64,000 nt of DNA, taken from positions 1-64,000 of IMG/VR virus record IMGVR_UViG_3300042923_000601; one strand, 5' to 3'. The translations under genes and the position numbers were made by a program. A model generated the notes under the pieces. That model had not been told where the DNA came from, ran no database searches, and saw nothing but the letters and a program-made list of their open reading frames with translations. Shown piece after piece: positions 23,483-58,775 of the stretch. Positions within the stretch are counted from its first letter, which is position 1, and every line of letters starts with the position of its first letter.

Positions 23483-23527
23483 TACACGTCATCTCCAATA
23501 CCAATATAGTTTGTGGTCTTGCAAGTA

Positions 23528-23561
23528 TATAATATATACTCCAGTATCTGGTTTTATACGG
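23528..23561 (-). promoter_or_regulatory. Bipartite early promoter
   Basis: CCGTAT-N18-ATATATTATA, 46 nt before the 23482 start. Confidence 0.65.
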
Positions 23562-26307: not shown

Positions 26308-26344
26308 GAACGCTACCCCCGGATCGGTTAGTATGATTCACTAC

Positions 26345-26354
26345 TATAATATAT
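26345..26354 (-). promoter_or_regulatory. Putative early promoter
   Basis: ATATATTATA 38 nt before the 26307 start. Confidence 0.55.
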
Positions 26355-26482
26355 ATTTCCATTTACCTGTATATGCCGTGCAAAAAAAATAATTGCTTTT
26401 TAATAGGTTGTACAGAAAGGCAAAAATAATTGAAGGATCATAGAGAAAGGAGGCGGATTTCCGCCTCCCACTCTGTGTCCTA

Positions 26483-32398: not shown

Positions 32399-32842
32399 TT
32401 AGCGTTGAACAAGTGAATTATCCGACACGACGGTTGGGATGAGCTGTTCATTGATGAAGTACTCAACACCCGTTGCAATGGTCTTAGCCGTATCAGCGTC
32501 AACCACGTAGTTAGACATGAGGTAATCCGTGAAATACTTGCGTATGGTAACATGTTGAAAATCGTCAATGCCGCGAGTGTCGAGAAGTTCAGGCATGGGG
32601 GAATTGGCGTTTAGTTGATTCAACACGTCCCGTACATTTAACCCAGCCGGTACGTAGTCAGGAACCTCCGCCTCAGTGATATTTTCATAATCAGCATTGA
32701 AGCTATCCTCAACGTACTCCAGTCCTTCAGTCGGAAGATCACTAGCTAACGCTTCCGCATATGCATCATCAACATCTGCTGCTTCAATCCGCATGGTGGT
32801 TGCCACCTGCCATGACACTGGCACCTCAAATACTTTACTCAA
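32399..32842 (-). CDS. Hypothetical protein
   Basis: Start revised to TTG 32842 after TAGGAGGAG. Confidence 0.7.
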   Translation of the reverse strand: MSKVFEVPVSWQVATTMRIEAADVDDAYAEALASDLPTEGLEYVEDSFNADYENITEAEVPDYVPAGLNVRDVLNQLNANSPMPELLDTRGIDDFQHVTIRKYFTDYLMSNYVVDADTAKTIATGVEYFINEQLIPTVVSDNSLVQR

Positions 32843-32898
32843 TATAACTCCTCCTAAATAGTAGTATATAGTAATGACCTGGTGGTCTGTTACTCGGG

Positions 32899-32908
32899 TA
32901 TAATATAT
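32899..32908 (-). promoter_or_regulatory. Putative early promoter
   Basis: ATATATTATA 57 nt before the 32842 start. Confidence 0.55.
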
Positions 32909-33954: not shown

Positions 33955-34578
33955 TTATTTAATTAGTGATTTGCCATCATCAATGATGAAGATAAATTCG
34001 CGATCGACATCGTCATTGACTTCGATGATACGTCGGGTTTCAGCCTCCACATCATCTACACGGTGGAATACTGCAATGTAGCGATTAACCCATTCTTTCG
34101 ATTTTCCGGTGATACTGCACAGCCACGCTCTCGTAATAGATAAGTGACTGTCAAAGATGACAATCATAGTATTTTCATGCATCATCTCAACTGCTATTGA
34201 GATTGCCAGTCGGGTTTTCATGTGCCCGGCCAGTCCTAAAATAACATTAAGCGCACTTCCTGGTAAACTAAAGGAAACTGCAATCTTCTTAATGCCTTCC
34301 GGGATAGCCACAGGTCCCTTACCCATTGTCATGATGGGAATATCATTCTCAATAAGATTCTCACCGTGAGACTTTACAATGCTCGCAGTCGTAACATCTC
34401 GTGTCGTACGAGTGATAACTGCGGAGCCAGCGGCACTTAATAGCGGTGCGCTACCAGACGGAAGATCACTGGTGAAAGACAGACTATTCTCAGCCATGCG
34501 GGTGTATGAGGAAAGCTCCAAATTCACAATCAGCTTATGACGAGCCATAACTGTTTCATTTGTTGAGTTAAACGCCAT
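33955..34578 (-). CDS. Degenerate RecA/DnaB-like P-loop protein
   Basis: GLAGHMKTRLAISIA (Walker A-like) and FIFIIDD (Walker B-like). Confidence 0.45.
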   Translation of the reverse strand: MAFNSTNETVMARHKLIVNLELSSYTRMAENSLSFTSDLPSGSAPLLSAAGSAVITRTTRDVTTASIVKSHGENLIENDIPIMTMGKGPVAIPEGIKKIAVSFSLPGSALNVILGLAGHMKTRLAISIAVEMMHENTMIVIFDSHLSITRAWLCSITGKSKEWVNRYIAVFHRVDDVEAETRRIIEVNDDVDREFIFIIDDGKSLIK

Positions 34579-34623
34579 TATAAATCTCTCCTTTAAATAT
34601 GGTATTAATTACATGTATCCCCA

Positions 34624-35175: not shown

Positions 35176-35228
35176 CCTTTAATTTAATATAGTAAAAAGA
35201 CTACCCAGTTAAGGGTAGTCTAATTGTA

Positions 35229-35843
35229 TTATTGCATGCCTGTGTGACCAAATCCATTGACACCGCGTTCGGTTTCGGAAAACTCTTCGCGGGATTTGGG
35301 TGTAAATTGCCCTTTAATCCGGTTCTGGATGACCAGTTGGCATATCCGGTCTCCATACTTGATGGTAAATGGTTCATCAGAGAGATTCTTCAGTGCCACT
35401 TTAACCTCTCCCCGATAATCGGGGTCGATGGTCGAAGTACCAGTCAGAAGAATAACTTGAAGCTTACTTGCAAGCCCACTGCGGGCCCGGATTTGGGCTT
35501 CAAGGTGCTCTGGAATTTCCATAAAGATACCCAGCGAGATCAGCGTTTTAGCGCCGGGTTCCAGTACGATTTCATCAATCGGTGTTTCAGAGCCGTCAAG
35601 TTCCTCGATAACGAGGTATGCTTTGGCATCTGCACCGACAGCAAATTCATTGGAGTATTTAGGCATGAAATTAGGGTCTTTCGCAGCAACCCCAATCTCA
35701 TAAGACGGGATACCGAGTTTACGGCTCATGAGGAGGTCGAAACCGTCCTCAAGGTCGTCAACGGCGCGCATTATATTGTGCATATCGCGCCGAAGTGCTC
35801 TCCACTGACGTGGAAAACTTGTAATGTCTTTGATCAGTCCCAT
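35229..35843 (-). CDS. dut: Trimeric dUTPase with N-terminal extension
   Basis: AVGADA (I), RSGLA (II), TIDPDYRGEV (III), GDRICQLV (IV), RGVNGFGHTG (V). Confidence 0.95.
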   Translation of the reverse strand: MGLIKDITSFPRQWRALRRDMHNIMRAVDDLEDGFDLLMSRKLGIPSYEIGVAAKDPNFMPKYSNEFAVGADAKAYLVIEELDGSETPIDEIVLEPGAKTLISLGIFMEIPEHLEAQIRARSGLASKLQVILLTGTSTIDPDYRGEVKVALKNLSDEPFTIKYGDRICQLVIQNRIKGQFTPKSREEFSETERGVNGFGHTGMQ

Positions 35844-35846
35844 GAA

Positions 35847-36623
35847 TTAATCTACATCCTCTCCCATGATATCGTTCACATCCGTAATGACCATAATGTT
35901 AGGATCATTAATCGGATAGACTTCGTCGTCAAACACGACGATTGCTTTCCCCTCCGGAGATAACGGATCGCGGGCTCCTTTCTTATCGAAGAAAATGAGT
36001 CCAACGTTCAGGTCGAATATCCCGGAATACTCATCCATCTTGTTGAATGTCATGCGGCTCTGATGCTCAAGGTGTTTCCTTGCATTCGCCTTGTCCGACA
36101 CTTTTGCCCAGCGAGGGCTGTAGGCATTGAAATCAAGCTGCTTCATCCATAGTGCAATGCGCAGTGCTTTCATACCAAGATCATCGTGTTCGGTAATTTT
36201 CGGGCGGAAGGTTTCACTGACCTTCAGGTCCATGGCATCAACATCTTTCAAGTGCTGAATGAGACTACTATTAATTGTCTCTGGCGTGATAGAAAATATT
36301 CTGTCGATGTGGTAGATTTTCTTTTCCTTATCTGTCCGAGGTCTAGCCACGAACATGTTTTCACCATCCATGTAGATACCGGGCTCGTGAATTTGCTTCG
36401 GCTTCTTCCCACGGAATGGTAAGATAAATGGTAAGCGAGCGACCAGTCCTCCCGGTGCTGTAAATCCAAAGGTATATGCGTTTCCTTCCTGCAAATCAGC
36501 TTCTGTGGTGTAGGGGTATACCCGGTACATAAATTCACCAAAGCTGATAATTTTGTTAGACAACTTCACTTCATTCGCCCCCAATAGTAGACTGTCACCA
36601 GCCCCGATCATGATGATTGCCAC
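35847..36623 (-). CDS. Hypothetical protein
   Basis: 258-aa ORF coupled to neighbours. Confidence 0.7.
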   Translation of the reverse strand: MAIIMIGAGDSLLLGANEVKLSNKIISFGEFMYRVYPYTTEADLQEGNAYTFGFTAPGGLVARLPFILPFRGKKPKQIHEPGIYMDGENMFVARPRTDKEKKIYHIDRIFSITPETINSSLIQHLKDVDAMDLKVSETFRPKITEHDDLGMKALRIALWMKQLDFNAYSPRWAKVSDKANARKHLEHQSRMTFNKMDEYSGIFDLNVGLIFFDKKGARDPLSPEGKAIVVFDDEVYPINDPNIMVITDVNDIMGEDVD

Positions 36624-37383
36624 CTAATGATGACCGGGTCTGGAGTTTGGATATGGATGATTCCTCTTGCTTTTTCGGTTCCTTATAGACCGGTACCATA
36701 TCGACGTCGAAATCTGTCAGAAAGGATTCTGAGATTTCTACTTCATGTACTCCGATTTCTGCGCTCTGCAAATAGGTTACCGCTATTAACCCTGCTAAAT
36801 GGAAATCGAATCGGTCAACTTCTCGAACCAATGTGTCAAAGGTGTTAATAGGTATTTGTATCGGATTATAGGATCGCGCATCAAGTGTTATTGACACGCC
36901 TTCTTCCCCATGGTCTTCACCCTCTCTTTTAATCACACAAGGCTTCAAGGTCACCACTTTACCCTTGTAGGGCTGGAATTGTGACTGAAAGCTTCTGTAT
37001 TTAGAATTAATCTTTACTGGACGGTCATCGTCATCATACTCAATGAGGTCGTCCATTTTAAGAACGTTTTGAATATACTCTTTACATACAGCTACAAAGA
37101 AGTCTCGGTTATTGAGATTGATAACGACAGACTCCAAGTATCCTTCCCCTTCCTTATTCTCTAAAACGAGAATAGAGGAATGCGTGAGCCGAAGTGTCGA
37201 CACACGCGGAGGGTCTTTATACGTTGACTTTCGTTTAAATTCAGCATGATAGTATAGCCGTTTCCCTTCTTTATCCGCATAGGACAGCCTAACTTTATGG
37301 GTAAGGTTAATTCGCCTGCCTAGATAAAGAGGAATAACTGTATTAATGCTATCTACATACTCCCTCGGTGTCAGTTTGATCAT
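36595..37383 (-). CDS. Hypothetical protein
   Basis: 262-aa ORF coupled to neighbours. Confidence 0.7.
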   Translation of the reverse strand: MIKLTPREYVDSINTVIPLYLGRRINLTHKVRLSYADKEGKRLYYHAEFKRKSTYKDPPRVSTLRLTHSSILVLENKEGEGYLESVVINLNNRDFFVAVCKEYIQNVLKMDDLIEYDDDDRPVKINSKYRSFQSQFQPYKGKVVTLKPCVIKREGEDHGEEGVSITLDARSYNPIQIPINTFDTLVREVDRFDFHLAGLIAVTYLQSAEIGVHEVEISESFLTDFDVDMVPVYKEPKKQEESSISKLQTRSSLGGNHHDRGW

Positions 37384-37687
37384 TCGGTTCCTCCGTTGGT
37401 GATAAGGTTAACGTCAATACATGTAAGATTTCCTCAGCTCCAGCTAATGCTTCCAATACTCTCGGGTGAGTTGCGTCAAGCTGTTGACAAAAATCCAGAT
37501 ACCATTCTGCAATGATAGGTGGAGTTGAGAACGCTGACGGGATACCGAGTTTAAACCGCCACTCCAGTATATCCTCGTAAGTAGTTACGTTCATGTCTAA
37601 TAAGTAGTAGATCAACTCTTCAGACCTAGACTTAAACGGCTGTCCCGTCGACTTGTACCAATTTTCAGACGGTACTAACCTTAGCAT
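37349..37687 (-). CDS. Hypothetical protein
   Basis: Probable start ATG 37687 overlapping the stop of the upstream small ORF. Confidence 0.6.
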   Translation of the reverse strand: MLRLVPSENWYKSTGQPFKSRSEELIYYLLDMNVTTYEDILEWRFKLGIPSAFSTPPIIAEWYLDFCQQLDATHPRVLEALAGAEEILHVLTLTLSPTEEPNDQTDTEGVCR

Positions 37688-37827
37688 GCGCCAAACCACC
37701 ATGGGTATGGCATGTATCTCGGACCTGTACCATATAGCTTGGCATAAACCATCGTCATATCCGGACGAGGTTGGGCTGTATTACATCCCGTGCTTATCAC
37801 ATAGAACGTTCGGGTACCTTTTCTCAT
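37681..37827 (-). CDS. 48-aa protein missing from the ORF track
   Basis: AAGGAG RBS; MRKGTRTFYVISTGCNTAQPRPDMTMVYAKLYGTGPRYMPYPWWFGAC; promoter motif 41 nt upstream. Confidence 0.55.
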   Translation of the reverse strand: MRKGTRTFYVISTGCNTAQPRPDMTMVYAKLYGTGPRYMPYPWWFGAC

Positions 37828-37867
37828 CAGTGGACAACTCCTTTAGGGTCGATTTCACGTTCATTAC

Positions 37868-37877
37868 TATAATATAT
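37868..37877 (-). promoter_or_regulatory. Putative early promoter
   Basis: ATATATTATA 41 nt before the 37827 start. Confidence 0.55.
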
Positions 37878-37909
37878 TATTTAATATTGTGTCTCGACCC
37901 CTATTATTT

Positions 37910-39484
37910 TTAATTACGCCCGTGTAGGTAGCTTTCCTTCCATTTTAAAACAATCCGCCCTTGATCATCTCTGACATAAGGTGCGGCCTTAGGTTTCGGT
38001 GCAATAGGTTCGTCGCCTACGTCAATTGTGATGATTTTACCCTGTTTAGCCTTCTTCCCAAGGTAAGGAAGACGATTCTGATACTGCGCATATGCTTCTT
38101 GGAAGTCAGAATTCAGTACTTCCATATAATAAACTGACTTGTTATTCTTCCGAAGACGACCGGGTAACTGGTCAGCATAAATCTTATTGCTATACGGGAT
38201 GGTGTTAATCATAAATTGAAGATTATAAATATCGGCACCTGTACCAAGTCCTTTTTCTGTACCTAAAATGATATCCTTCTCAAGCTCTCGCTCACGGTCC
38301 TTCTTCGGAATATCACTTGTATACATCCCGACGCTATACTCCGGGAAATTTCTCTCTAAAAACTTAGCCACTACCGTTAGGAATGCCTTAGTAGACCCGA
38401 GAATCAGGAGCTTACCCCCATCTTCTCTATACGGCACCATAATGGTATTGATGGCTTTATAAATCGCATTAAAAAAGGGAACCCGTGCGCCTTGGTGTTC
38501 GACGAGATAGTCCGAATACTTGGCTGCCGATAGTCCATCCTTTGTCTTACAGTTGATTCGTTGCTTTGTGGTTGGTTTATGGTGAAACGTGAATATGATC
38601 ATAATGATATGGTTCGTCTCAATAGTGGCGAACTCTTTACCGATGATAGGCACTCGGCTAAAGAGCCGCTGGAAGATGCGATCTTCATCACGGTCGCCTC
38701 GTCCTGCAGAGGATGTAAGGTAGAAGTTCCGTTTGACGTTAGTGTAGCAGTCGATCTTCACATTGGTTGCAAAGTCCCAGTGCGCTTCATCAATAACCTT
38801 AATCCCGGCTTTGGTCTTCTCAATCACCTTCTGGAAAGTATCCCAGCCGTGTTGACGGGCAAAGGAACGAACTGTCGCTCGGTTAAAGATAAAAATATCC
38901 ACGTCTTCCCTTTCACCTTTTAGGATAGAAAGGCAGTCTTTAGAACCCTTTACAATCATGACTGAGGACTTAGTCTTTGTGGTAGCTTCGAGTATACCCT
39001 CATACCATTGATCAGCGATTCGACTTGCTTGACCGGGTGTAAAGATAACCGCCTTATGCCCAAAGTAGGACATGGCTGCTGTCATACAATAGGTTTTACC
39101 CTTACCGGTATCAAGGTCACAGTATAGCTGGGAATGCCCCTTGGTGTATTGATACCTCTTATTCCCTCCGCAGAAAAAAGAAATAACTTCAAGCTGCAAA
39201 GGCTCACGTGGCTCACGGAGGAGTTGAATATCCATCCGCTCGTATGCTTGAGGTTTTGTGTTCACCTCAACAGTTCGGTCTAATGTAGAGGCAAGCTTAT
39301 CAGCTGAATATCCTCTTGGGATGCGAAGCTCGCGTTTATCTTCGTCATACGCGAACCCTACAATTTCTCTTTGATAAATCCGGTTATTGAAGACTGACAA
39401 TTGATTCTCAATCGTGGTACAGTCTCCTAAGTCATAGTTGGGAATGACATAATGCGAAAAATTAGCAATCACTGTATCTGGCAT
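37910..39484 (-). CDS. Superfamily 2 (DEAH-type) helicase
   Basis: Start revised to ATG 39484 (TAGGAGGT); DTGKGKT, VIDEAH, LTSS, QLPGRLR. Confidence 0.9.
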   Translation of the reverse strand: MPDTVIANFSHYVIPNYDLGDCTTIENQLSVFNNRIYQREIVGFAYDEDKRELRIPRGYSADKLASTLDRTVEVNTKPQAYERMDIQLLREPREPLQLEVISFFCGGNKRYQYTKGHSQLYCDLDTGKGKTYCMTAAMSYFGHKAVIFTPGQASRIADQWYEGILEATTKTKSSVMIVKGSKDCLSILKGEREDVDIFIFNRATVRSFARQHGWDTFQKVIEKTKAGIKVIDEAHWDFATNVKIDCYTNVKRNFYLTSSAGRGDRDEDRIFQRLFSRVPIIGKEFATIETNHIIMIIFTFHHKPTTKQRINCKTKDGLSAAKYSDYLVEHQGARVPFFNAIYKAINTIMVPYREDGGKLLILGSTKAFLTVVAKFLERNFPEYSVGMYTSDIPKKDRERELEKDIILGTEKGLGTGADIYNLQFMINTIPYSNKIYADQLPGRLRKNNKSVYYMEVLNSDFQEAYAQYQNRLPYLGKKAKQGKIITIDVGDEPIAPKPKAAPYVRDDQGRIVLKWKESYLHGRN

Positions 39485-39572
39485 GACTAACCTCCTAAGA
39501 AAGAAAAAATAACGAGCAGAGTAGAGAAGGGCAATTACGCCCTTCTCCATCTGTTTTATACCCGATAGGTTA

Positions 39573-39923
39573 CTACTCTTTGCGATATACCATTGGATGC
39601 CGATGAATATGCATACACACAACATCTCGTGGCGATAATACCCATTTAGCATCTTCGACAAAACTGGCCTTGAACTCGTCCACTGTGAAATCTAACTCGG
39701 ATTCCAGAATTAATTCACGGTATGACTCGTCCTCGGTTTCAAATGTAATAATCCACGCGGGGTCTACATTTGTCCGGAATCCTTCTACAAAATGTATAGT
39801 AACGATGTCCGGATTATCAACGTCCACACCCTCAGGTGGTTCATACATCGCTCTTAAATAGTTCTGCAGTGCACATTCAATTTTTATGAATTTTTCATTA
39901 TCAATACTATTCATAATAAACAC
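39573..39923 (-). CDS. Hypothetical protein
   Basis: 116 aa, acidic; GAGGTG RBS near second Met. Confidence 0.65.
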   Translation of the reverse strand: MFIMNSIDNEKFIKIECALQNYLRAMYEPPEGVDVDNPDIVTIHFVEGFRTNVDPAWIITFETEDESYRELILESELDFTVDEFKASFVEDAKWVLSPRDVVCMHIHRHPMVYRKE

Positions 39924-39936
39924 CTCAGTGCTATGT

Positions 39937-40530
39937 TTAAAAGTTGAAAGTACCAGTCAGATGTGGACTTTTTGTTCGCACATATGCCATGCCGGTATTC
40001 TTTAAATAATGCATTGGGTCAGCAGTTTTCTTAAGAGAATGAAGTGCTTGTGATGCTTTTGATACGAAGGTGGCCATGTATCCCGAAGTTGTCTCCTCAA
40101 CAATGTACGGGTCAAGACCATATTCAAATGCCGCCTGTACCATCGCTTTGATATCACTTCTAGCGATTGTTATACCGGATGCTAACCCATCAACTGGGCG
40201 AACTTCAATCAGTGGTTTATTGTTTAGTGATATCATGTAGCCTTTTGGCATACGAGTAGCTACATAGTCAGTTGCAGCATTGATGTATTTATCATAGACA
40301 TCGTTTGTAATCATCCTTACAATCGAGTCAATATTAGGGATTGTGCGGCTTTCCAAATAGATCAGCCGTGTCCAGGCAGAGACCGAATGGTAGTATACAA
40401 TTTGAATCTGACCATTTATTCTTACCATTGCCCGGATACGGCTACCCTCAGCAATGTCAATTTTCCAACCCGGTGGAAGTTTAGTTTCTACTTGAGATAA
40501 TGTATCGAGTATCATTTCCTCACTTGCCAT
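39937..40530 (-). CDS. Hypothetical protein
   Basis: 197 aa with TAGGAGGG RBS. Confidence 0.7.
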   Translation of the reverse strand: MASEEMILDTLSQVETKLPPGWKIDIAEGSRIRAMVRINGQIQIVYYHSVSAWTRLIYLESRTIPNIDSIVRMITNDVYDKYINAATDYVATRMPKGYMISLNNKPLIEVRPVDGLASGITIARSDIKAMVQAAFEYGLDPYIVEETTSGYMATFVSKASQALHSLKKTADPMHYLKNTGMAYVRTKSPHLTGTFNF

Positions 40531-40587
40531 TACTATAACCCTCCTAAAATAAAGTAAAGAAGAGCGGGAAAAATCCCGCTCTTCAAA

Positions 40588-40887
40588 TTATGCCTCAGGG
40601 GCGGATTCTTCTTTGATATACATGATGACAGTATCCTGTGTTTCGGACGTGTTCTTGAACCGAATCAAGACCGTCGATTGGTTAGGCTTGAGGGAACCGC
40701 CAGCCATTTTGATCAGTCGAGTCCGCATGTCCCGGATGGTGTACGCTTGTGCACCAGTTACCTGAGACGGCAGGTTTTCTTCGACCGAAAGATATTTTCT
40801 AGCAGCGATAAGACCACGTGTAGCCCCAATCGATGGTTCTTCACCAGGGATATTCAGATCATTACGAACGTCATTTACGATTGCCAT
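40588..40887 (-). CDS. Hypothetical protein
   Basis: 99 aa with AAGGAGG RBS. Confidence 0.7.
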   Translation of the reverse strand: MAIVNDVRNDLNIPGEEPSIGATRGLIAARKYLSVEENLPSQVTGAQAYTIRDMRTRLIKMAGGSLKPNQSTVLIRFKNTSETQDTVIMYIKEESAPEA

Positions 40888-40889
40888 TG

Positions 40890-41372
40890 TTAAATTCCTC
40901 CTTTAGGTTGTCCAAGTGTTTTGGATTCTTCAGTTTTTTTAAGATAATGCTGACCTGCGGCGTGTATAATCTGCCTATCAACATCACTGATACCATGACG
41001 TACTACGATACCATGAGCACGAGCTAATGCTTGTTCGCGTCTGGTAAGTTGCTCCTTATACCCTGGCGAGTTGCGATGCTCATCAAGCCCAGGGAGAGCT
41101 TCGTTGAATCTGGCTAACAGGCCGTCTGCAATGCATTCGATTGCAAATTCAGGCTCATGGCCTAACTTTATGCATTCGGTATAGGTTGGTTCAACATCAG
41201 CTTCGAGTGTCATAATCATGATACCTTCAGTCAGTTCAGATATCAGAATACGATTACGATTCATTCTCTGCGGCATAAATAACGACGTGGAGTTTGCACA
41301 CCAACCAGCTGGAAGGGATTGATTCAATCGTTCAGCGACCTTGTTAATTATTCCATCCATTAGCGCCACCAT
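40890..41372 (-). CDS. Hypothetical protein
   Basis: 160 aa, overlaps upstream gene end. Confidence 0.65.
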   Translation of the reverse strand: MVALMDGIINKVAERLNQSLPAGWCANSTSLFMPQRMNRNRILISELTEGIMIMTLEADVEPTYTECIKLGHEPEFAIECIADGLLARFNEALPGLDEHRNSPGYKEQLTRREQALARAHGIVVRHGISDVDRQIIHAAGQHYLKKTEESKTLGQPKGGI

Positions 41373-41637
41373 CCCTCTTCACCCAGCTATTCCGGCATAT
41401 GGTATACATTTCAAACAGCTGCTCCTCAGTCATCGTTTCCAGTACGTGAGGATTCCAGTCCCAGTGACCATACGATGCCCTGAAAAACCCACATTTATCA
41501 ATCAGTGGGTTACCCATAACGCCGTAGTTCGGTTGAGTTCCAATAACCAGAGACATCAAGTCTCTCTTATCCAGCTCAACAGTGAGCTTCCTTGCAGTTT
41601 CGGGTGTTCCAGTTGTCTCAGCATCCATCGTTTTCAT
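41344..41637 (-). CDS. Hypothetical protein
   Basis: 97 aa with AAGGAGG RBS. Confidence 0.65.
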   Translation of the reverse strand: MKTMDAETTGTPETARKLTVELDKRDLMSLVIGTQPNYGVMGNPLIDKCGFFRASYGHWDWNPHVLETMTEEQLFEMYTICRNSWVKRDGGANGWNN

Positions 41638-41649
41638 CCTCCTTATATT

Positions 41650-42831
41650 CTACAGCGGGCGGTTAATAGCATACCGACGGCCGAAGATGTTACATGTACC
41701 AGCACATTTCAGATTCGGGATTTGAACCTTCGATTTCAGGTCAGCGCCTGATTGAAGTTTCGGATAATCCAGATGAATCTGGGAATGCTCATCCGAGTTA
41801 TTCAGGTATTCGCGGAACGTATCAGCCGTTTGCATAGCGATTTCGCGCTGAGCATTGCAGCAGATGCGCTCGAACGTTTTCAAGATAAAGTGCTCGTATG
41901 TACCGCGTTCAACGATGTCAACCATCGTCGCCTGTGGGTAGGACAAAGCGCCTCTGTAATTAAGGTCAACACGCCATTCGTCCTCAAATGGTTTGACGAT
42001 CTCAGGAACGTAATAGTCCTCAGCATCTTCATCCAGATAGAAGGAGTGATTCAGGGTACGATGCCGCTGCGCTTGAGCATATTGAGCTAAACTGCCCTTA
42101 TACGTCGTGCAATAGACATCCCCATAGTATGGTGTGAACTTCCGTTCATGCAGATGAAGCATGGACAGCTTCCGGTTTTTGAGCCTAGCATTCAGCTCGT
42201 CCACCCGGAATGGCTGCAGTGTATCCAGAAATTCTGGGATATAACTTGCAAGCTTCCCGCCGAATCCGCCGTCATATTTACCCGTAGAGGCGTCGATGTT
42301 GGCATCGTGGAAGTCTTCCAGCATATGAATCAGATAATTCAGTTGATGCAGGTTAGTTGTGTATACCATCGTTGTAGGTGTAAATACACTGAGTTGATAA
42401 CGAGCGTTTTCAATCGCGTATTTTGTCACCTGCAGTGGTGTAAGTTTAGGAAACTGTTCAGCAATGATCGGTGTCAGCTTGTCAATCCATTTACGATAGA
42501 CTACGCCTTCGTCACCCATTGCCTTCATCGTTGTATAACGTGCAGACTTCTCCGAGGTCGTATACATACCTTCGTTGTTCAGCAGCATGGCAAGCGCCTT
42601 CGGGATATCCGAAAAAACAAAGGTGTAATTCACATGACCATACACCGAGTGGTGTCCACTACCCAGTGTCTGGTCGATACGCCGCTGTGTGCGCTCGGTG
42701 TCTTCAGCCATAATAGCTTCGACGGTATCCTTCATGTAACATACTCCTGCGGCATGAGACGAGAACCCAAGGGCCTCGTCCAATGGCAGGATAAATTGCG
42801 GCTTCGTTGAGCCCATAACCACTGTCTTCAT
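41650..42831 (-). CDS. thyX: FAD-dependent thymidylate synthase ThyX (long form)
   Basis: GHHSVYGH, SEKSARYT, QAQRHRT, ERICCNAQREI. Confidence 0.85.
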   Translation of the reverse strand: MKTVVMGSTKPQFILPLDEALGFSSHAAGVCYMKDTVEAIMAEDTERTQRRIDQTLGSGHHSVYGHVNYTFVFSDIPKALAMLLNNEGMYTTSEKSARYTTMKAMGDEGVVYRKWIDKLTPIIAEQFPKLTPLQVTKYAIENARYQLSVFTPTTMVYTTNLHQLNYLIHMLEDFHDANIDASTGKYDGGFGGKLASYIPEFLDTLQPFRVDELNARLKNRKLSMLHLHERKFTPYYGDVYCTTYKGSLAQYAQAQRHRTLNHSFYLDEDAEDYYVPEIVKPFEDEWRVDLNYRGALSYPQATMVDIVERGTYEHFILKTFERICCNAQREIAMQTADTFREYLNNSDEHSQIHLDYPKLQSGADLKSKVQIPNLKCAGTCNIFGRRYAINRPL

Positions 42832-44014: not shown

Positions 44015-45205
44015 CTACTCGTTGATGAATAGGAGACTGTAGCTTGAAGACTTTGTCTTCTTGTAGGTCAGTGGATTCTTAAGCTGTTGTTTAACCTTCT
44101 CAAACATCAGTCCTGCGATAACAGAACCGCTTAGGATTGCAGCGTCATTCATGCTGACCATCCGGTAGTTAGAAGGTTCCTGTTTAACCGTCCAGTCTGG
44201 GATATCAAGCTCATTATTCTTATCCCGGATCAGGTTACGGATAATCATTTCAATGTGTACCGAAGGCGTCTGGATTCCCCCTTGACGGAAGAGCTTGTTC
44301 AGCACCTTGATGAATTCGTTATAGTCAGTTACACCATCCAGCATCTTCTTACCCTTCTGGATAAACTTCGTAAGCTGCTTGATTGGTTTAGTCAACTCGT
44401 TATTACTAACGCGCAGGAAGAAGAACGGCTCAGTAGCATCAATGTGCTTCAGTTCGATCAGGCATTCCTCTTCATCCGAGTCGATGCTGAAGAACTGACT
44501 GTCACGAAGAAGTCCATACATCTGCTTACTGAGGTATAGGTGCATGCCGGTTTCTTCCCGGATTTCAATCATCTCACCGGTTTTCTTGTCACGGAGCGTA
44601 ACCTTCTCCATGTAATAGTTGTCATATTTATCATAGGCTTCTTCCGACTCCATCTTGATGTCTTGCCGTAACATGACAATCACATACTTGGACTCTTTGA
44701 TCTCAGGGTTGAGCTTAAAGAGCCAGCCGTTTGTGTTGACCAAGATGTTGTAGGTGTCAATGAGCACAACCTTGGCGCTGTTTGTAGCAAGCGCATGTCG
44801 AGCAGATAGCCCCAGCTGCGTCTTTGCTTCATTTGTGTCGATACCTGCGAATTTACCTGCATGCATACCATAGTTTACGTTATAGAGTAAGCCGTAGCAT
44901 ACCTTGCAGATTTTACCGTTCTTCACACCGCAAGTAGCCGGTGATCGGAGTTCCACATTCTTACCAATAAGATGTGTATCCTTGGTGCTGATAACCTTGA
45001 ATTTCTTAGGGCCGACTTTCATAAACCGGCCGTCATAGCTTGTCAGATCAGCCTGCGAGTCAATACGTGTAGAGTACAGATTCACAGTGTCGCAGGAATA
45101 GTGTGGGTCTTCATTAAGCGTCACGTTCTCCGTTGCGAAGTTAATGTGGCGACCAAAGTACCCAGCTTCTGCTACACCCATCTGCATGATACTTGCCTTC
45201 CTACC
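44015..45205 (-). CDS. Multisubunit RNA polymerase beta-prime (C-terminal part), exon 2
   Basis: GRKA...AGYFGRH (bridge helix), LRSPATC...ICKVCYG zinc site, EAKTQLGLSARH (trigger loop), VHIEMIIRNL. Confidence 0.88.
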   Translation of the reverse strand, partial: GRKASIMQMGVAEAGYFGRHINFATENVTLNEDPHYSCDTVNLYSTRIDSQADLTSYDGRFMKVGPKKFKVISTKDTHLIGKNVELRSPATCGVKNGKICKVCYGLLYNVNYGMHAGKFAGIDTNEAKTQLGLSARHALATNSAKVVLIDTYNILVNTNGWLFKLNPEIKESKYVIVMLRQDIKMESEEAYDKYDNYYMEKVTLRDKKTGEMIEIREETGMHLYLSKQMYGLLRDSQFFSIDSDEEECLIELKHIDATEPFFFLRVSNNELTKPIKQLTKFIQKGKKMLDGVTDYNEFIKVLNKLFRQGGIQTPSVHIEMIIRNLIRDKNNELDIPDWTVKQEPSNYRMVSMNDAAILSGSVIAGLMFEKVKQQLKNPLTYKKTKSSSYSLLFINE

Positions 45206-46551
45206 TGGTACCTTCACATAGTTCATTACACTATGCAGTTCGCACGGTTTATACGCCGTTGAACTTCTCCGGTTTTTCTCCGGATGTCGAGACTATATCT
45301 TGTCCATAGGGAGACATAAGTCTTCCCCTTAGGACCCTGCCATTTCCATTTAAGAGCATCTCACTCACCCATTTGGGCCGTACGCCTGTTGCCGAATTGC
45401 ACGGCTACTCACTGTTGTCACAGCTTTCGGCTAGTCGTTGAACGTGCTACTATCATATCTTTGCAGATTCACGGAGTGGTTAGTCCCGTTAGTCTACTCC
45501 CCTTAAACTTTTATACAATGAATATATTTCTTCTTTGGTGAAGTATTGGTCTGATATACCTGGCTGAACTCGTTTTCGGTATACATTTTCCACAAAACCT
45601 ATATCAATAGCTAGTCGGCCTGCGATATAGTTATGAGGTCTTCCGGCTACCAAATATCTACAAACTGCATGAACTGTCTCGTCGTCATACTTTCGCTGAC
45701 GTTTGCGGTTTGGTTTGATATTGTATTGATCAGATATTGATTTGTACTTCTTACCAATTGCTATCTCAACCAATAGTGAGAAAAATCGTTTGTTGTCTTT
45801 AACGTTAGATGTGCCAATTATAGCGAGTCCAATCTGACCATAATCCCAATTATCAACTTCCATCATCTTACAGACCTGGTGTACTTGGTCATATGTTAAC
45901 TGGGATTTGATCAAACCATACTCTATGGCATGCATAGTGTTTCTATGAAACGATGCCCATTCCAGATTCTTGTAGTAGTTGTACGTTGAATCACCGCTTA
46001 GATGATTCACTATTGGTAAGTTATCGGGGTTAGGGATAAATGCTAGTGCAACAAGCCGACTGACCATGTAATATGACATGCCATTCGTAGTCCCAACCTC
46101 GCTCAATTTAACAACTACCTTAGGATAACCGGATTTATCAACTTTAGTTTGGAATTTTCTCTCTATACCACGGTCTTTAGAGTATAACCGACCATGGTTT
46201 GATATTAAATAACGTCCACTTATTGCATTGCCGTCTTTGGCGTCATATACCAGAGGACGCCATTCTTCTCTGTCTTTCGGTATCAATCTTAACATGATGT
46301 AATGTCATCCTCTCGTATTAACCTCCATCTCCAACTAGATTCATGATCATAGGGGGATATGATAATACTTCGCTGCTGATAGCACATTTGTTGCAACCCT
46401 TAGACTTACTATCGTCAATAGGTTAGACCTCACCTTGTTTCTGGTTTCCCTCCTGCATCCCGACCAAGGGATTAGGTGTGAGGATTAAGCGCGTCCCAGC
46501 AATTAGACAGGTTATTCAACTGAGCGTTTCCACCCAGAGGGGGCAGTTCTT
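45206..46551 (-). mobile_element. Group I (IA-type) self-splicing intron with HNH gene
   Basis: P AATTGCTGGGA 46494-46504, Q ATCAGCAGCG 46371-46380, R GTTCAACGACTA 45432-45443, S AAGATATAGTCT 45290-45301; P1 GGGU/GCCC with U.G wobble; extra helices between P7 and P3. The 3' boundary is uncertain by one base. Confidence 0.88.
45489..46295 (-). CDS. Intron-encoded NUMOD4-HNH homing endonuclease
   Basis: EEWRP...YLISNHGR (NUMOD4); VSRLVALAFIPNPDNLPIVNHLSGD...NLEW...N (HNH); lies in a loop closed by TATCATATC/GATATGATA. Confidence 0.9.
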   Translation of the reverse strand: MLRLIPKDREEWRPLVYDAKDGNAISGRYLISNHGRLYSKDRGIERKFQTKVDKSGYPKVVVKLSEVGTTNGMSYYMVSRLVALAFIPNPDNLPIVNHLSGDSTYNYYKNLEWASFHRNTMHAIEYGLIKSQLTYDQVHQVCKMMEVDNWDYGQIGLAIIGTSNVKDNKRFFSLLVEIAIGKKYKSISDQYNIKPNRKRQRKYDDETVHAVCRYLVAGRPHNYIAGRLAIDIGFVENVYRKRVQPGISDQYFTKEEIYSLYKSLRGVD

Positions 46552-47421
46552 ACCCACTGCATCTACATACGCTGACTGAGGAGTGTTCAAACCATCACCC
46601 ATAAGGCTGCTGTTTGTTACATTCGGAATGGTGTCTCCGGACAGTGTCGGTTTAAATCCAACGTTAACGAAGACCTCTTGAGCTTGATGTTTGTTGATTA
46701 CACCTGCACGAATCATTGGTTTGAGCGGGTTGTTATCATCCATTTCATTCAGCAAGATATCAAAGAGCCGATCTGTTTGTCCCCGTAGGAATTGTTCGGC
46801 TTCGTCCACCCGGAATTTATCTGGGTCATCCTCAATATGCGTATTAAGAATATCGTTCACTTCTTTATTGCGACGAGCCATCTTAAGCATATCAAAGATT
46901 GAAATGGAGTTACCGAACAGTGGCCCCATTGCGGTTGCCAGCTTATTCATGAAGACTTGTGTATCGTGATAGATTTCAGATAACCCAGCTGCTGTAAACT
47001 GATCTTTATGGTTATCGGCAAATCGGTCAAAGAACTTCTTATACTCCGCATTCGTAAAGTGTTTCGGTGCAAAGATATCATCCTCTGTAACCGCAATACC
47101 GGTTACGATGTATGGCCGCCACATAATCATATTGAAGACGAAATGCACAAACGGCATTTCGAGTAGTGGACCATCACTGTCAAGCTTATATGCCATTTTA
47201 AGTTGTCCCAAATCTTCCATTGAGATGGACATGTCTTTGCGAGTTTCGGTGATGAGCATATTTACATAAGACTCGTACTCGGAGACCTCTGCAAACTCAT
47301 TGATTACCGGACACAGCTTCATTCCGTTATCTGCTGCGCCATATGCACGTAGTCTACCTTCGATATCCGACAAGCTGTAGTTCCAGCCTGCTAATACCGA
47401 CCCCTTTTTCTTCTTACCCAT
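46552..47421 (-). CDS. RNA polymerase beta-prime (C-terminal part), exon 1
   Basis: Ends NSSLMGDGLN..SAYVDAVG, which continues into GRKA of exon 2; spliced product about 686 aa; no DFDGD motif. Confidence 0.82.
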
Positions 47422-47522
47422 TCTGTTACCTCCCGTAATAGTAGTCGAAACGAGTGCGCCTAGATGATCAGTTACGATTTATTGTCATCTATGAAGTAGG
47501 TTAATATTGCACTCGGCATGGA

Positions 47523-47532
47523 TATAATATAT
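47523..47532 (-). promoter_or_regulatory. Putative early promoter for the RNAP gene
   Basis: ATATATTATA 102 nt before the 47421 start. Confidence 0.55.
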
Positions 47533-47618: not shown

Positions 47619-48155
47619 TTAAGCATCCTGCAGCTTCACGCGGCTTGCTTTGATCATTGCAGCCTTTGCTTCCGGGTTTTGAACCAGCTTGAAGCGTTGA
47701 CGGCGAACGATCTGTTCCGCTTTCGCATAGCGGCTGTTCGACCGGATTTGCGTCAGGTATTTCTTCAGGATCATACGTGCCGCAACGACCTTACGGTATG
47801 CCGGGTCACCAGCAGCCTTAGCCATGCGGATTTTCATCAAGTTAATTGCCTTTTGTCTCCGCGCCTCCGGGGACAGTACCACATAAGATTTACTAGCTGC
47901 GTCCTCAGTCAGCAGTTGGTCGCGGATAAACATGGAGCCGTGTTCGGCCAGGAATGCCTGCATCCCGTCAGGACCGATTTCAGCCTCCAGCAATGCCATA
48001 GTGGCCTCCGCCATCAGTTCATCATCAAATTCATCGAAATCAAGGGCGTCATCATCGACGTCTTCGCCTGTGATGTCGTCCTCATAATCGGTGTCAGTCG
48101 CTTCAGCAACGTATGCGCCTTCTTGGATGGCGCGAAGGTGTGCCAATACATCCAT
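47619..48155 (-). CDS. Probable virion head protein with acidic propeptide
   Basis: Acidic N-half with several x-x-E sites, basic C-half; AACA-N6-TA motif upstream. Confidence 0.55.
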   Translation of the reverse strand: MDVLAHLRAIQEGAYVAEATDTDYEDDITGEDVDDDALDFDEFDDELMAEATMALLEAEIGPDGMQAFLAEHGSMFIRDQLLTEDAASKSYVVLSPEARRQKAINLMKIRMAKAAGDPAYRKVVAARMILKKYLTQIRSNSRYAKAEQIVRRQRFKLVQNPEAKAAMIKASRVKLQDA

Positions 48156-48194
48156 TTTTTACTTCTCCTTTCGCAGTACAAATTTGTTCTTGAT

Positions 48195-48206
48195 TAATAT
48201 GCTGTT
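48195..48206 (-). promoter_or_regulatory. Putative AACA-N6-TR promoter
   Basis: AACA-GCATAT-TA 40 nt before the 48155 start. Confidence 0.55.
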
Positions 48207-48273
48207 GGTTTGTTGAATCTATACTTGCAGGATCGCAGACGAAGTCGTATTCTATTCGACTGAAAACTGTATT

Positions 48274-48283
48274 ATATATTATA
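48274..48283 (+). promoter_or_regulatory. Putative early promoter (plus strand)
   Basis: ATATATTATA 37 nt before the 48320 start; orientation follows gene direction. Confidence 0.6.
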
Positions 48284-48319
48284 CTAATGAACTCATACTA
48301 TTAAAGGAGAGATTTATTT

Positions 48320-49117
48320 ATGACAGAAGAACGTCGTTCCATCGTCTTACCTAAAAGCCAAGTGGCTATTATGGTACACACGAAATCTAAGCGGCATTTA
48401 AGATCAACAGACTCTATCCTAAACGCCGGGGCAATTAAGGTGACAGAAGAGCCTATCGGGGTGCTCGGTACAATACCTCACGACCCAGTTTCAGGCATGT
48501 CGGTATTACAAAATATGATAGGAGATGAACGGTTCAATCCCAATCTCGCCAAGTCAGTGCGCATAGCAGTTAAATATATTCGTGATAAATACGGGTTCAT
48601 GCCGCATGATGTCATCATCAAACCGTCTTTTGAAGACGACACACTACTGGTTAAATCGGGTGGTGGATATTTTGACAGTAAACCTGTTAGCTATACAACT
48701 AACAAGACGAAGAAGAGTCCTGACCTTCTGATAGGTACAATCACCATGTCCGCCAACGTTGAGAAGACTATGAACCAATCGGGTGTTACCTATAGAAAAG
48801 GTGAATACCAAGAGATGCTGAAAACTCTTGGTATCCGGTCAACAGCTCCTAGTCTGTTTGTAGCAATGCTGCTACACGAGCTTGGACATGCTTATACGTT
48901 GTATCTATTCTTCAAGGAAGACCTGCAAGAAAACTTTGATATCCTGAACCAGCATGTCAACACCGGACAACGGTTCACATTCTCTGGATTGGCAGCTGAC
49001 GATATTGACCCAATGATGTGGAATTACATCGACTACGATGAAGCTCGGGCTGACTTATTCATGTGGGCTAATATGCGATCGGTATGGAATATCATTTCTG
49101 AGGAGGTTGGGTATTAA
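48320..49117 (+). CDS. Putative zincin metallopeptidase
   Basis: LLHELGH (HExxH) with downstream EARAD. Confidence 0.6.
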   Translation: MTEERRSIVLPKSQVAIMVHTKSKRHLRSTDSILNAGAIKVTEEPIGVLGTIPHDPVSGMSVLQNMIGDERFNPNLAKSVRIAVKYIRDKYGFMPHDVIIKPSFEDDTLLVKSGGGYFDSKPVSYTTNKTKKSPDLLIGTITMSANVEKTMNQSGVTYRKGEYQEMLKTLGIRSTAPSLFVAMLLHELGHAYTLYLFFKEDLQENFDILNQHVNTGQRFTFSGLAADDIDPMMWNYIDYDEARADLFMWANMRSVWNIISEEVGY

Positions 49118-51355: not shown

Positions 51356-51426
51356 CTAAACCTTAGAGATTGTCCTATTGTGGGACAATCTCTTTATTTT
51401 TACATATCTTTAAATACCCTTTGCTC

Positions 51427-51438
51427 GACAATCTATTA
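51427..51438 (+). promoter_or_regulatory. Putative RACA-N6-TA promoter
   Basis: GACA-ATCTAT-TA 30 nt before the 51468 start. Confidence 0.35.
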
Positions 51439-51467
51439 ATCTTACTAATGAAGGAGAGTGTTTAAAG

Positions 51468-51815
51468 ATGTCGTTCAACGCATTGATCATCTTGTATTTC
51501 CTGATGACCAACTTCGGGATTTACTTGCTGGGTATCTTCGAGACTCGGAGGGTGAATATGTATGCAAAGGTACACGGGAAACTTCCGATGCCCACGTATA
51601 TTACCATCACATCAACCGCTCCGTTCGCGTACACAGCTCGCATCACATTGACATTGGGCCGGATTGCAACACAAGTTTTCAAACTGAAGTTCTCACAGAA
51701 GACGAATACGATATTTATGCATCTTACCATGTTTATACTGCTTATCACAACGGGGATGTTTCAATTTGCCTTTGGTTTAATGCGACACTTAGGATGGTTA
51801 GTCAAAAGAATCTAA
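51468..51815 (+). CDS. Small membrane protein
   Basis: Two hydrophobic segments; AAGGAG spacing fits 51468 rather than the GTG at 51458. Confidence 0.55.
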   Translation: MSFNALIILYFLMTNFGIYLLGIFETRRVNMYAKVHGKLPMPTYITITSTAPFAYTARITLTLGRIATQVFKLKFSQKTNTIFMHLTMFILLITTGMFQFAFGLMRHLGWLVKRI

Positions 51816-58737: not shown

Positions 58738-58775
58738 GGTCAAATGCCTCCTCTTCACTCTTAAGTAATGTAGAT

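Follow-up and report, generated by a model that had tools for sequence, protein, structure and literature searches.

An uncultured 246-kb soil jumbo phage carries early and late promoter sequences of the same consensus as those of the uracil-DNA phage AR9, along with a sigma-like RNA polymerase subunit of the AR9 type, yet it encodes a dUTPase, a ThyX-family thymidylate synthase candidate and a thymidylate kinase, and it has lost the valine that makes the AR9 polymerase reject thymine. Thymine DNA in this phage is thus a well-supported inference, although not a demonstration in the absence of chemical or transcript data. We started from a window consisting of the first 64 kb (64,000 nucleotides) of a circular, CheckV-complete 246.7-kb IMG/VR genome (IMGVR_UViG_3300042923_000601), in which a first-pass annotation of positions 35229-42831 had noted AACA-N6-TR motifs before structural genes together with dUTPase and ThyX genes in DNA that is not AT-rich by eye, and had proposed that the phage polymerase reads a thymine version of the AR9 late promoter. 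Every testable element of this proposal was borne out and independent lines of evidence were added, while the annotated interval itself was found to hold the nucleotide genes and one early-type promoter, but no late promoter.

Late and early promoter motifs

To determine if the AACA-N6-TR motif exceeds chance, we first counted it as a bare pattern and found that it is not enriched in the window (60 matches versus 82 ± 9 in shuffles), and that none of the matches lies in a promoter position inside 35229-42831. The motif could not have been shown to exceed chance from the window alone. By contrast, genome-wide in upstream intergenic DNA it occurs 39 times in sense and 17 times in antisense, compared to 17.1 ± 3.6 in shuffles, mostly 31-57 nt before the ATG. 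It also came out on top of an unbiased search over all X4-Nk-Y2 dyads (AACA-N7-AA, 34 versus 6.3, z 12.7; AACA-N6-TA, 28 versus 6.9) and of an unbiased EM search (aAACA-N4-AtTAAt, about 64 sites in 136 regions). Of 127 hits to the resulting matrix, 56 are in intergenic sense positions within 150 nt of a start, where about 7.5 are expected, with a median predicted 5'UTR of 31 nt, and the motif is about two-fold depleted inside genes. As a control, the same pipeline recovered the published AR9 motifs, giving aAACA-N4-ATTA at 82 sites in AR9 (94 published, PMC5312081), and it found the same motif in two relatives, G001 and G004. The early promoter of AR9 (AAATATATATTAT-N6-G; PMC5312081) also has a counterpart of the same core and spacing, TATATTAT-N6-G, which occurs 29 times versus about 4 expected. 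The phage organises its genes behind two promoter classes, an early TATATATTATA-N5-G and a late AACA-N6-TA class, the latter presumably recognised by the non-virion RNA polymerase (nvRNAP) together with its sigma-like subunit.

Within the window, the late motif precedes the tail sheath gene 56983-58737 (phrog_19666; gAACAGTAGAATAAT at 58773-58788, minus strand, 39 nt before the gene, 13.2 bits), the gene 58780-59562 encoding a homolog of an AR9 virion structural protein (59579-59594, minus strand, 13.3 bits; tblastn to AR9 99739-100449) and ten other genes. The best-scoring late promoter of the window (cAACAGCATATTAAT at 48192-48207, minus strand, 16.1 bits) lies before 47619-48155. Late-type sites on the minus strand were found at 14377-14392 before the family B DNA polymerase gene 10556-14353 (11.8 bits), at 4854-4869 before 3971-4813 (12.2 bits), at 8075-8090 before the terminase-like ORF 6977-8038 (13.0 bits) and at 34603-34618 before 33955-34578 (11.6 bits), just outside the annotated interval. 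On the plus strand they occur at 14435-14450 before 14475-15767 (11.5 bits), divergent from the site of the polymerase gene, and at 51426-51441 before 51468-51815 (13.8 bits). Early-type promoters were located at 48275-48289 (plus strand) before 48320-49117 and, on the minus strand, at 32893-32907 before 32399-32842, at 23522-23536 before 22835-23482 and at 26339-26353 before 25975-26307, which also has a late-type site at 26398-26413.

Genes for thymidine nucleotide synthesis

The dUTPase gene (35229-35843, minus strand) encodes a canonical trimeric enzyme of 204 aa with a ~55-aa N-terminal extension. It matches PF00692 (E 3.6e-22) and passes two NCBIfam cut-offs (NF001862, 128.4 bits against 103; TIGR00576, 124.8 against 102.55). 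Motifs RSGLA, TIDPDYRGE, GDRICQ and RGVNGFGHTG (motifs 2-5) align to solved dUTPases, and motif 1 (AVGAD) is seen in the sequence. The gene is the last of an operon (37349-37702, 36595-37383, 35847-36611, dUTPase) headed by an early-type TATATTAT-N6-G promoter at 37862-37876 (minus strand, predicted TSS at 37862), and an intrinsic-terminator-like hairpin with a 9-bp stem followed by a T run lies directly after its stop codon (35198-35221, minus strand).

The ThyX-family flavin-dependent thymidylate synthase candidate (41650-42831, minus strand) is a divergent long form of 393 aa. PF02511 matches with E 5.6e-17, but only over residues 25-170; TIGR02170 gives 38.6 bits, below the 87.9 equivalog cut-off, no PDB sequence match was found, and the RHR triad (256-258) is in a non-canonical place. 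Nevertheless, SGHHS, SEKSxRY, RHR and AQxE are invariant in the family alignment, and the AF2 model (pLDDT 81.6) has the predicted ThyX fold: 49 of the 50 Foldseek PDB matches listed are ThyX and one (rank 47) is the ThyX-fold methylase PolB, albeit with a TM-score of at most 0.49. The long-form ThyX-family candidate is, moreover, the sole thymidylate synthase candidate in 17 of 20 Clostridia genomes. Its transcription unit is headed by an early-type promoter at 47517-47531 (minus strand), upstream of the first piece of the nvRNAP beta' C-terminal subunit gene, runs through ThyX and ends at a strong terminator-like hairpin (40559-40584, minus strand; 11-bp stem with 7 GC pairs). A thymidylate kinase (Tmk; PF02223, 78.9 bits) is encoded elsewhere in the genome. 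The dUTPase would remove dUTP and supply dUMP, ThyX would convert dUMP to dTMP, and Tmk dTMP to dTDP.

Three complete relatives also carry such a set: G001 has dUTPase, ThyA (E 2e-73) and Tmk, whereas G002 and G003 have dUTPase, ThyX and Tmk. AR9, BpSp, LPJP1 and phiR1-37 have no dUTPase, ThyX or Tmk, and AR9, LPJP1 and phiR1-37 have no ThyA. The gene set is not obligatory for the lineage, however, as G004 has Gly206 in its sigma-like subunit and the AACA motif but no dUTPase, thymidylate synthase or Tmk, and the co-occurrence rests on essentially two clades, representing one or two evolutionary events. No tblastn homolog of AR9 Ugi, dCMP deaminase, gp150, RNR or kinases, nor any detectable homolog of the AR9 deoxyribonucleotidase, was found, although absence by BLAST is weak evidence for Ugi-type inhibitors, which are small and fast-evolving. 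GC content is 0.43-0.48 across the window and 44.6% for the genome, compared to 27.8% in AR9. The genome was assembled from ordinary soil metagenomes (of unknown library method) and is also present in a second soil run and in silage runs, whereas U-DNA phages fail PCR-based library preparation (bioRxiv 10.1101/2020.12.14.422802).

Relationship to AR9 and the sigma-like subunit

The phage belongs to a deep sister lineage to the AR9/PBS1 group (Takahashivirus). Of its 233 proteins, 54 hit AR9 in syntenic order at only about 21-35% identity, including all four nvRNAP and the virion RNAP (vRNAP) subunit homologs, and its nearest RNAP relatives are AR9/PBS1, the S6 group and phiR1-37. The nvRNAP beta' C-terminal subunit is encoded in two pieces, 46516-47421 (minus strand; tblastn to AR9 127982-128575; phrog_3015) and 44015-45187 (minus strand; 27% identity over 383 aa to AR9 128609-129679; phrog_3015, E 9.5e-41), interrupted by an HNH endonuclease ORF (45489-46295, minus strand; phrog_59, E 1e-26) for which no Rfam intron match was found. 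AR9 likewise has genes interrupted by HNH endonucleases and an early promoter before its nvRNAP beta'C gene. Synteny extends to the neighbouring SF2 helicase (37910-39484, minus strand; ResIII/Helicase_C; 29% identity over 477 aa, E 6e-52, to AR9 130457-131836) and to a GroEL-like chaperonin (1481-3235, minus strand; phrog_5725, E 4e-57), which as in AR9 lies upstream of the sigma-like nvRNAP subunit gene (three genes downstream here, two in AR9). The latter sits across the contig junction at genome 244636-246141 (minus strand), outside the window. Unlike AR9, the phage has a tubulin-like gene.

The sigma-like subunit shows 24% identity over 453 aa to AR9 gp226 (E 8e-22; phrog_25005, E 6e-24), and the best PDB matches of its AF2 model are the gp226 chains 7S01_A (E 1.5e-16) and 7UM0_A, with a short helix at 226-234 in the 2.1bis position. 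Importantly, residue 206, the valine that sterically excludes the thymine methyl group at template position -10 in AR9 (PMC9209446), is Val in all four uracil-side phages, Gly in 9 of 11 members of the close clade (D-S/P/A-G-M-W) and Arg, with Gly just before it, in this phage and Arg in P0001. Ile207 is Met, and Tyr210, which stacks on -9G, is Arg. The engineered V206G change makes AR9 nvRNAP accept -10T (PMC9209446), and the nearest relatives of the phage naturally carry Gly at exactly this position, albeit in a lineage in which neighbouring contacts have also changed. The effect of Arg on the pocket is unknown, and since thymine at -11 is excluded in AR9 by the DNA backbone conformation rather than by a side chain, the substitution explains only -10, whereas a thymine genome also needs T at -11.

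Alternative readings and related systems

It remains possible, though unlikely, that the phage has uracil DNA like AR9 and that the dUTPase, ThyX-like protein and Tmk serve other purposes, such as moonlighting or regulatory dUTPase functions, a ThyX homolog with another substrate, or a Tmk acting as dUMP kinase. Its closest characterised relatives are all uracil-DNA or presumed uracil-DNA phages (PMC7598289), the late promoter keeps A at both positions that are template U in AR9, the ThyX scores below the equivalog cut-off and G004, in the same broad lineage, lacks the whole gene set. However, a dUTPase with all catalytic motifs would destroy the dUTP such a phage needs, and the conservation of the trio in four complete genomes, with ThyA substituting for ThyX, points to selection for dTMP synthesis itself. 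Moreover, none of the trio occurs in four uracil-side phages, Val206, described as absolutely conserved in uracil phages (PMC9209446), is lost, and the GC content is 44.6%.

Equally unlikely is that thymine DNA and the late promoter are as proposed but that recognition has changed mechanism, for example by reading the non-template AACA or duplex DNA, as sigma factors and phiKZ gp68 do. Key AR9 contacts are not conserved (V206 to R/G, I207 to M, Y210 to R; betaN R363 to K and K375 to I in a gappy alignment), the -11 thymine clash in AR9 arises from the DNA conformation itself (PMC9209446), and extra conserved positions (A at +2, T at +3) are seen here but not in AR9. Conversely, the same motif, spacing and 2.1bis helix with the invariant Trp are retained, and the fold match to gp226 covers the full length. 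A slightly less likely possibility still is that the DNA carries another thymine replacement or a hypermodified pyrimidine accommodated by the remodelled pocket: Arg at 206 and 210 are unusual and could contact a modified group, about three quarters of the proteins have no AR9 homolog, most of the ORFs scanned individually have no family hit, and the ThyX-fold enzyme PolB methylates UMP/dUMP in another pathway. Yet no ThyA-type hydroxymethylase (PF00303) or dCMP deaminase was found, the pathway present is exactly the canonical dTTP branch, one relative uses a standard ThyA, and the genome assembled normally from metagenomes. That the AACA-N6-TR matches are chance occurrences, as the low window-wide count and the 71 of 127 matrix hits lying elsewhere in the genome might suggest, is very improbable given the strand- and position-specific enrichment (z about 6-13), the top rank in two unbiased searches, the same motif in two relatives and in AR9, where it is experimentally validated, and its depletion inside genes.

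Among known systems, the AR9-related phages phiR1-37, the S6/MarsHill group, LPJP1 and BpSp (uracil DNA shown for phiR1-37, BpSp and S6 and presumed for the MarsHill group; we found no such statement for LPJP1) share the RNAP family and the gp226-type subunit, but those tested keep Val206 and lack dUTPase, ThyX and Tmk. The phiKZ-like Chimalliviridae resemble the phage in having thymine DNA (inferred here), two phage RNAPs, a distantly related fifth subunit (8QUE_B is the third-best fold match) and a PhuZ-like tubulin gene. Here, however, no chimallin is detectable, the promoter consensus is AR9-type rather than TATG, the sigma-like subunit is clearly of the gp226 type and the RNAP subunits are closer to the AR9 group. 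We favour, with reasonable though not full confidence, the explanation that this phage very probably replicates ordinary thymine DNA while using an AR9-type transcription system. Its polymerase would read the template as 3'-TTGT-5' instead of 3'-UUGU-5', such that the phage looks like a natural thymine-reading version of the AR9 system.

Genome context and relationship to AR9

The 246,689-bp contig is an IMG/VR viral record that CheckV rates as 100% complete and, although it is listed as linear, its ends (1-176 and 246514-246689) overlap by about 176 nt (not perfectly identical), so that the sequence is circular or circularly permuted, with a 288-aa ORF (246221-574) spanning the junction. GC content is 44.6%, and a simple gene call based on ORFs and codon usage gave 233 genes with strong AGGAGG ribosome-binding sites. 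The window holds a divergent family B DNA polymerase, an SbcC-like ATPase, a GroEL-like chaperonin, a tail sheath, terminase-like genes and a fragment of an RNA polymerase (RNAP) beta' subunit. Two of these ORFs resemble the terminase large subunit and lie 54 kb apart: the short one, 6977-8038(-), matches only the N-terminal ATPase part (AR9 terminase exon 1, 34.5% identity), while the long one, 62024-64195(-), matches the rest and also part of the N-terminal family. The nearest database relatives of the beta' subunit, at only 26-29% identity, are AR9/PBS1, BpSp, the Staphylococcus S6/MarsHill group, Listeria LPJP1 and Yersinia phiR1-37, and reviews list uracil DNA for PBS2/AR9, BpSp, phiR1-37 and S6 (PMC7598289). 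Megablast of the interval 35229-42831 against GenBank phages and tblastn with the ThyX protein found nothing, so there is no close cultured relative. However, when we compared the genome locally with the annotated AR9 genome, we found that 54 of the 233 proteins have AR9 homologs in largely conserved order, including homologs of all four non-virion RNAP (nvRNAP) subunits, the virion RNAP subunits, both DNA polymerase parts, helicases, the major head protein and many virion proteins. The gene for the nvRNAP beta' C-terminal subunit, within 44015-47421(-), is in two ORFs (46516-47421 and 44015-45187) separated by an HNH endonuclease ORF (45489-46295) and about 520 nt of non-coding DNA, resembling the intron/homing-endonuclease-interrupted genes of AR9, but Rfam found no group I intron even at E<=1. 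Elsewhere, at genome 140929-144051(-), a 1,040-aa phage-encoded polyphosphate kinase (all four PPK1 Pfam domains, E down to 3e-65) with an N-terminal region of about 370 aa of unknown nature lies behind an early promoter.

Late and early promoter motifs

The first-pass annotation had noted the AR9 late promoter motif AACA-N6-TR before structural genes, an observation that we confirm, although the bare pattern is under-represented in the window (60 matches vs 82 +/- 9 in shuffles), which by itself would suggest chance. Position and strand reverse that reading: in intergenic DNA upstream of genes the motif occurs 39 times in sense, 17 times in antisense and 17.1 +/- 3.6 times after shuffling, mostly 31-57 nt before the start codon. 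The window-wide count was misleading because the motif is about two-fold depleted inside genes on both strands in this phage, AR9 and the two complete relatives G001 and G004, relative to a first-order Markov model that ignores codon structure, consistent with selection against spurious late promoters. To determine if the motif also emerges without prior assumption, we searched all X4-Nk-Y2 dyads after masking the ribosome-binding site and the early promoter core and found that AACA-N7-AA ranks first (34 vs 6.3), closely followed by AACA-N6-TA (28 vs 6.9). An EM motif search, which converged on terminator T-runs until these were masked and the search was restricted to proximal DNA, gave aAACA-N4-A-t-T-A-A-t with about 64 sites in 136 regions. 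When the genome was scanned with this matrix, 56 of 127 hits were located in intergenic, sense-oriented positions within 150 nt of a start, whereas about 7.5 would be expected from the 11.8% intergenic fraction, and the predicted 5'UTR has a median of 31 nt. The downstream genes include the tail sheath, the tape-measure-like giant ORFs, virion protein homologs and the virion RNAP subunits, but also the DNA polymerase and SbcC. Importantly, the same pipeline applied to AR9 recovered its published late consensus (82 sites, against 94 published in PMC5312081) and found the same motif in G001 and G004.

A second motif, not mentioned in the first-pass annotation, is even clearer. TATATATTATA-N5-G (TATATTAT-N6-G) occurs 29 times against about 4 expected, nearly always 25-100 nt upstream of a gene in the correct orientation, and corresponds to the early, virion-RNAP promoter of AR9, AAATATATATTAT-N6-G (PMC5312081). 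The same pattern gave 43 matches in AR9, 27 in G001 and 18 in G004, while sigma-70-like promoters are not enriched in the region scanned (28 vs 28.2). In 5' leaders genome-wide (for example at 48290-48320) we also detected an element, ACTA/CTACTA, of unknown function that sits a few bases upstream of the Shine-Dalgarno sequence (ACTA-N4-GG in 30 upstream regions vs 3.5 in shuffles; CCTACTA 8 vs 0.56).

The only promoter inside the interval 35229-42831 is an early one, at 37862-37876(-), which heads an operon that ends with the dUTPase gene and a terminator at 35198-35221. The ThyX gene lies in a unit that begins at the early promoter 47517-47531(-) before the nvRNAP beta'C gene and ends at a strong terminator at 40559-40584. 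Both enzymes are therefore predicted to be made early, before replication. Seven ORFs co-transcribed with the dUTPase and ThyX genes, within 35847-37702 and 39937-41628(-) (for example 35847-36611, 36595-37383, 39937-40530 and 40890-41372), have no AR9 homolog and no hit in the family libraries they were scanned against (Pfam and PHROGs for most, NCBIfam for some, with 41344-41628 not included in these scans), and are candidates for further nucleotide-pool or host-takeover functions.

Nucleotide-pool genes and their co-occurrence

The dUTPase and ThyX genes sit exactly where the first-pass annotation placed them. The product of 35229-35843(-) is a genuine trimeric dUTPase that passes two NCBIfam cut-offs (NF001862 and TIGR00576) and has all five motifs (AVGAD, RSGLA, TIDPDYRGE, GDRICQ and RGVNGFGHTG). 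A dCTP deaminase, which would have favoured uracil DNA, can be dismissed on these motifs and on the score of the corresponding model (40 bits vs a cut-off of 92.8). The product of 41650-42831(-) carries a Thy1 domain above the Pfam gathering score (62.6 bits vs 24.8), but it is not a standard ThyX: it is 393 aa long, has no sequence match in the PDB or in GenBank phages, scores 38.6 bits against the TIGR02170 thyX equivalog cut-off of 87.9 and lacks the contiguous signature RHRxxSxxxxSxR, as S-E-K-S-A-R-Y is present at 93-99 while the RHR is at 256-258. It belongs to a family of more than 3,900 long ThyX-domain proteins, whose invariant residues include SGHHS, SEKSxRY, an RHR triad moved to the C-terminal half, suggesting a fused pseudo-dimeric ThyX, and AQxE. 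The AlphaFold model (pLDDT 81.6) matches ThyX-family structures almost exclusively, as 49 of the 50 Foldseek matches listed (E down to 3.5e-5) are ThyX and one is the ThyX-fold methylase PolB, albeit with modest TM-scores of at most 0.49. The long form (about 380 aa) is widespread in bacteria, being found in 561 species genomes, mostly small-genome gut Clostridia. In 20 small Clostridia genomes that carry it, it is the only Thy1 gene, and 17 of the 20 have no ThyA. It is therefore probably their working thymidylate synthase, although this evidence is indirect and both MAG incompleteness and thymidine salvage remain caveats.

In addition to dUTPase and ThyX, the genome encodes a thymidylate kinase (Tmk) at 199025-199681, which would complete the branch from dUTP to dUMP, dTMP and dTDP. 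The AR9 annotation has none of these and instead has Ugi, dCMP deaminase and a deoxyribonucleotidase. None of the AR9 nucleotide-pool genes has a tblastn homolog here (no hit to AR9 Ugi or dCMP deaminase at E 0.01), and none of the trio of this phage has one in AR9. PF00383 is also absent, but Ugi-type proteins are too divergent for absence by BLAST to be more than weak evidence, and the NT5C Pfam model was uninformative, as it did not detect the annotated deoxyribonucleotidase of AR9 itself. No UDG gene was found in any clade genome, which argues neither way, whereas pathways of the known 5-hydroxymethyl-dU type were rejected because there is no ThyA-family enzyme. Among the relatives, G001 has dUTPase, Tmk and a canonical ThyA (E 2e-73) in place of ThyX, and G002 and G003 have dUTPase, ThyX and Tmk. 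By contrast, AR9, BpSp, LPJP1 and phiR1-37 have no dUTPase, ThyX or Tmk, and the three tested for ThyA have none. Replacement of ThyX by the unrelated ThyA while dUTPase and Tmk are kept argues that dTMP synthesis itself is the selected function, and the literature treats dUTPase and thymidylate synthase as the activities that a uracil-DNA phage must suppress (PMC8150378). The more distant G004 has neither set, showing that Gly206 (see below) and the AACA promoter can exist without a phage-encoded dTTP pathway, which is unsurprising for a thymine phage that relies on its host but is not informative. Softer support comes from the GC content, which is far above the 27.8% of AR9, and from the assembly of the genome from ordinary soil metagenomes and its recurrence in others (only DNA metagenomes, from soil and silage), whereas uracil phage DNA resists PCR-based library preparation (bioRxiv 10.1101/2020.12.14.422802).

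The sigma-like subunit and its base pocket

Guided by synteny with AR9 (GroEL, an intervening hypothetical gene or two, then the sigma-like subunit behind an early promoter), we found a 501-aa ORF across the contig junction, at genome 244636-246141(-), that is 24% identical to AR9 gp226 over 453 residues (BLASTP E 8e-22) and matches phrog_25005 (E 5.8e-24, positions 18-443 of 464). The best PDB hits of its predicted structure are the AR9 gp226 chains 7S01_A (Foldseek E 1.5e-16, 497 columns) and 7UM0_A, followed by phiKZ gp68, and the model keeps a short helix at 226-234, between helices 206-224 and 239-257, in the 2.1bis position. In AR9, the template -10 uracil sits in a pocket formed by this helix, the C-beta of Val206 leaves no room for a thymine methyl group, and V206G makes the enzyme accept thymine; the valine is reported as absolutely conserved in uracil-phage homologs (PMC9209446). 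In a 22-sequence alignment, in which the flanking Asp and the invariant Trp (Trp229 here, Trp208 in AR9) fix the register without gaps, AR9, BpSp, LPJP1 and phiR1-37 read D-x-V-I-W-x-Y/F, nine of the eleven members of the clade of the window phage read D-S/P/A-G-M-W-x-R, and the window phage and its closest relative P0001 read D-G-R-M-W-E-R. Thus, neither Val206 nor the Tyr/Phe210 that stacks on -9G is conserved. The clade therefore naturally carries the substitution that was engineered to relax uracil specificity, and the window phage has moved on from it to Arg. In the tree, the valine-bearing isolates lie on one side of a well-supported branch and the Arg form is nested within the Gly clade, while a sister group of the clade, represented by the sigma-like homologs P0016-P0018 on contigs of 5-26 kb, has Val or Ala at this position (D-K-V/A-L/M-W) and could mark a second uracil lineage or the ancestral state. 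The betaN pocket residues R363 and K375 align to K and I, but in a gappy region, and we treat this as weak evidence.

Several independent computational lines thus support the interpretation of the first-pass annotation that the polymerase would read a thymine version of the AR9 promoter, and on sequence evidence alone the loss of Val206 and the presence of the dTTP pathway argue against a requirement for template-strand uracil at -11 and -10. Thymine DNA nonetheless remains an inference, as neither the DNA nor the transcripts have been measured, and the correlation between genes and residue amounts to one or two evolutionary events. The substitution accounts for -10 only, since thymine at -11 is excluded in AR9 by the DNA backbone conformation. 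Moreover, Arg at 206 and at 210 could act in ways that we cannot predict, and recognition may have shifted to duplex or non-template DNA.

All five clade genomes also encode a tubulin/PhuZ-like protein that is absent from AR9, BpSp, LPJP1 and phiR1-37. In this genome the gene (84530-85732(-)) lies behind an early promoter and its product scores weakly (PF00091 20-22 bits against a cut-off of 33; phrog_4733 E 7e-6), but the genuine PhuZ of 201phi2-1 also reaches only 27.8 bits and the orthologs in G004 and G002 are above the cut-off. No chimallin (PF25677, phrog_4795) was detectable in this genome or in G001-G004, whereas the 201phi2-1 control gave E 3e-241.

AR9 nvRNAP is the only known multisubunit RNAP that reads its promoter on the template strand and demands uracil there. 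The published view ties gp226-type subunits to uracil-DNA phages (PMC9209446), the papers that we could search describe gp226 homologs only in such phages, and reviews divide RNAP-encoding jumbo phages into uracil-DNA AR9-like and thymine-DNA, nucleus-forming phiKZ-like groups (PMC7598289). The system is best described as an AR9-type transcription system in a lineage equipped for thymine DNA, and with a polymerase pocket compatible with it, and a lineage with the promoters and subunit of AR9 but a thymine-making gene set and a natural Gly or Arg at position 206 breaks this dichotomy. It supplies natural variants for asking how uracil specificity arose, including the unexplained -11 position, and gives a simple genomic predictor (residue 206 plus the dUTPase/thymidylate synthase/Tmk set) for calling uracil versus thymine DNA in uncultured jumbo phages. 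It also reopens the question of how such a short promoter is kept from firing on host DNA when the uracil mark is absent, for which some form of spatial organisation is one candidate answer. In a bolder reading, which we consider about as likely as not, the clade is a natural thymine-reading counterpart of the template-strand promoter recognition of AR9, with a remodelled base pocket (Val206 to Gly or Arg, Tyr210 to Arg) in phages that make their own dTTP and that carry a PhuZ-like tubulin without a recognisable chimallin. This would make it an evolutionary intermediate between the uracil-DNA AR9 group and the thymine-DNA, nucleus-forming phiKZ group, and would show that uracil dependence is a lineage-specific add-on (or loss) rather than intrinsic to this polymerase family.
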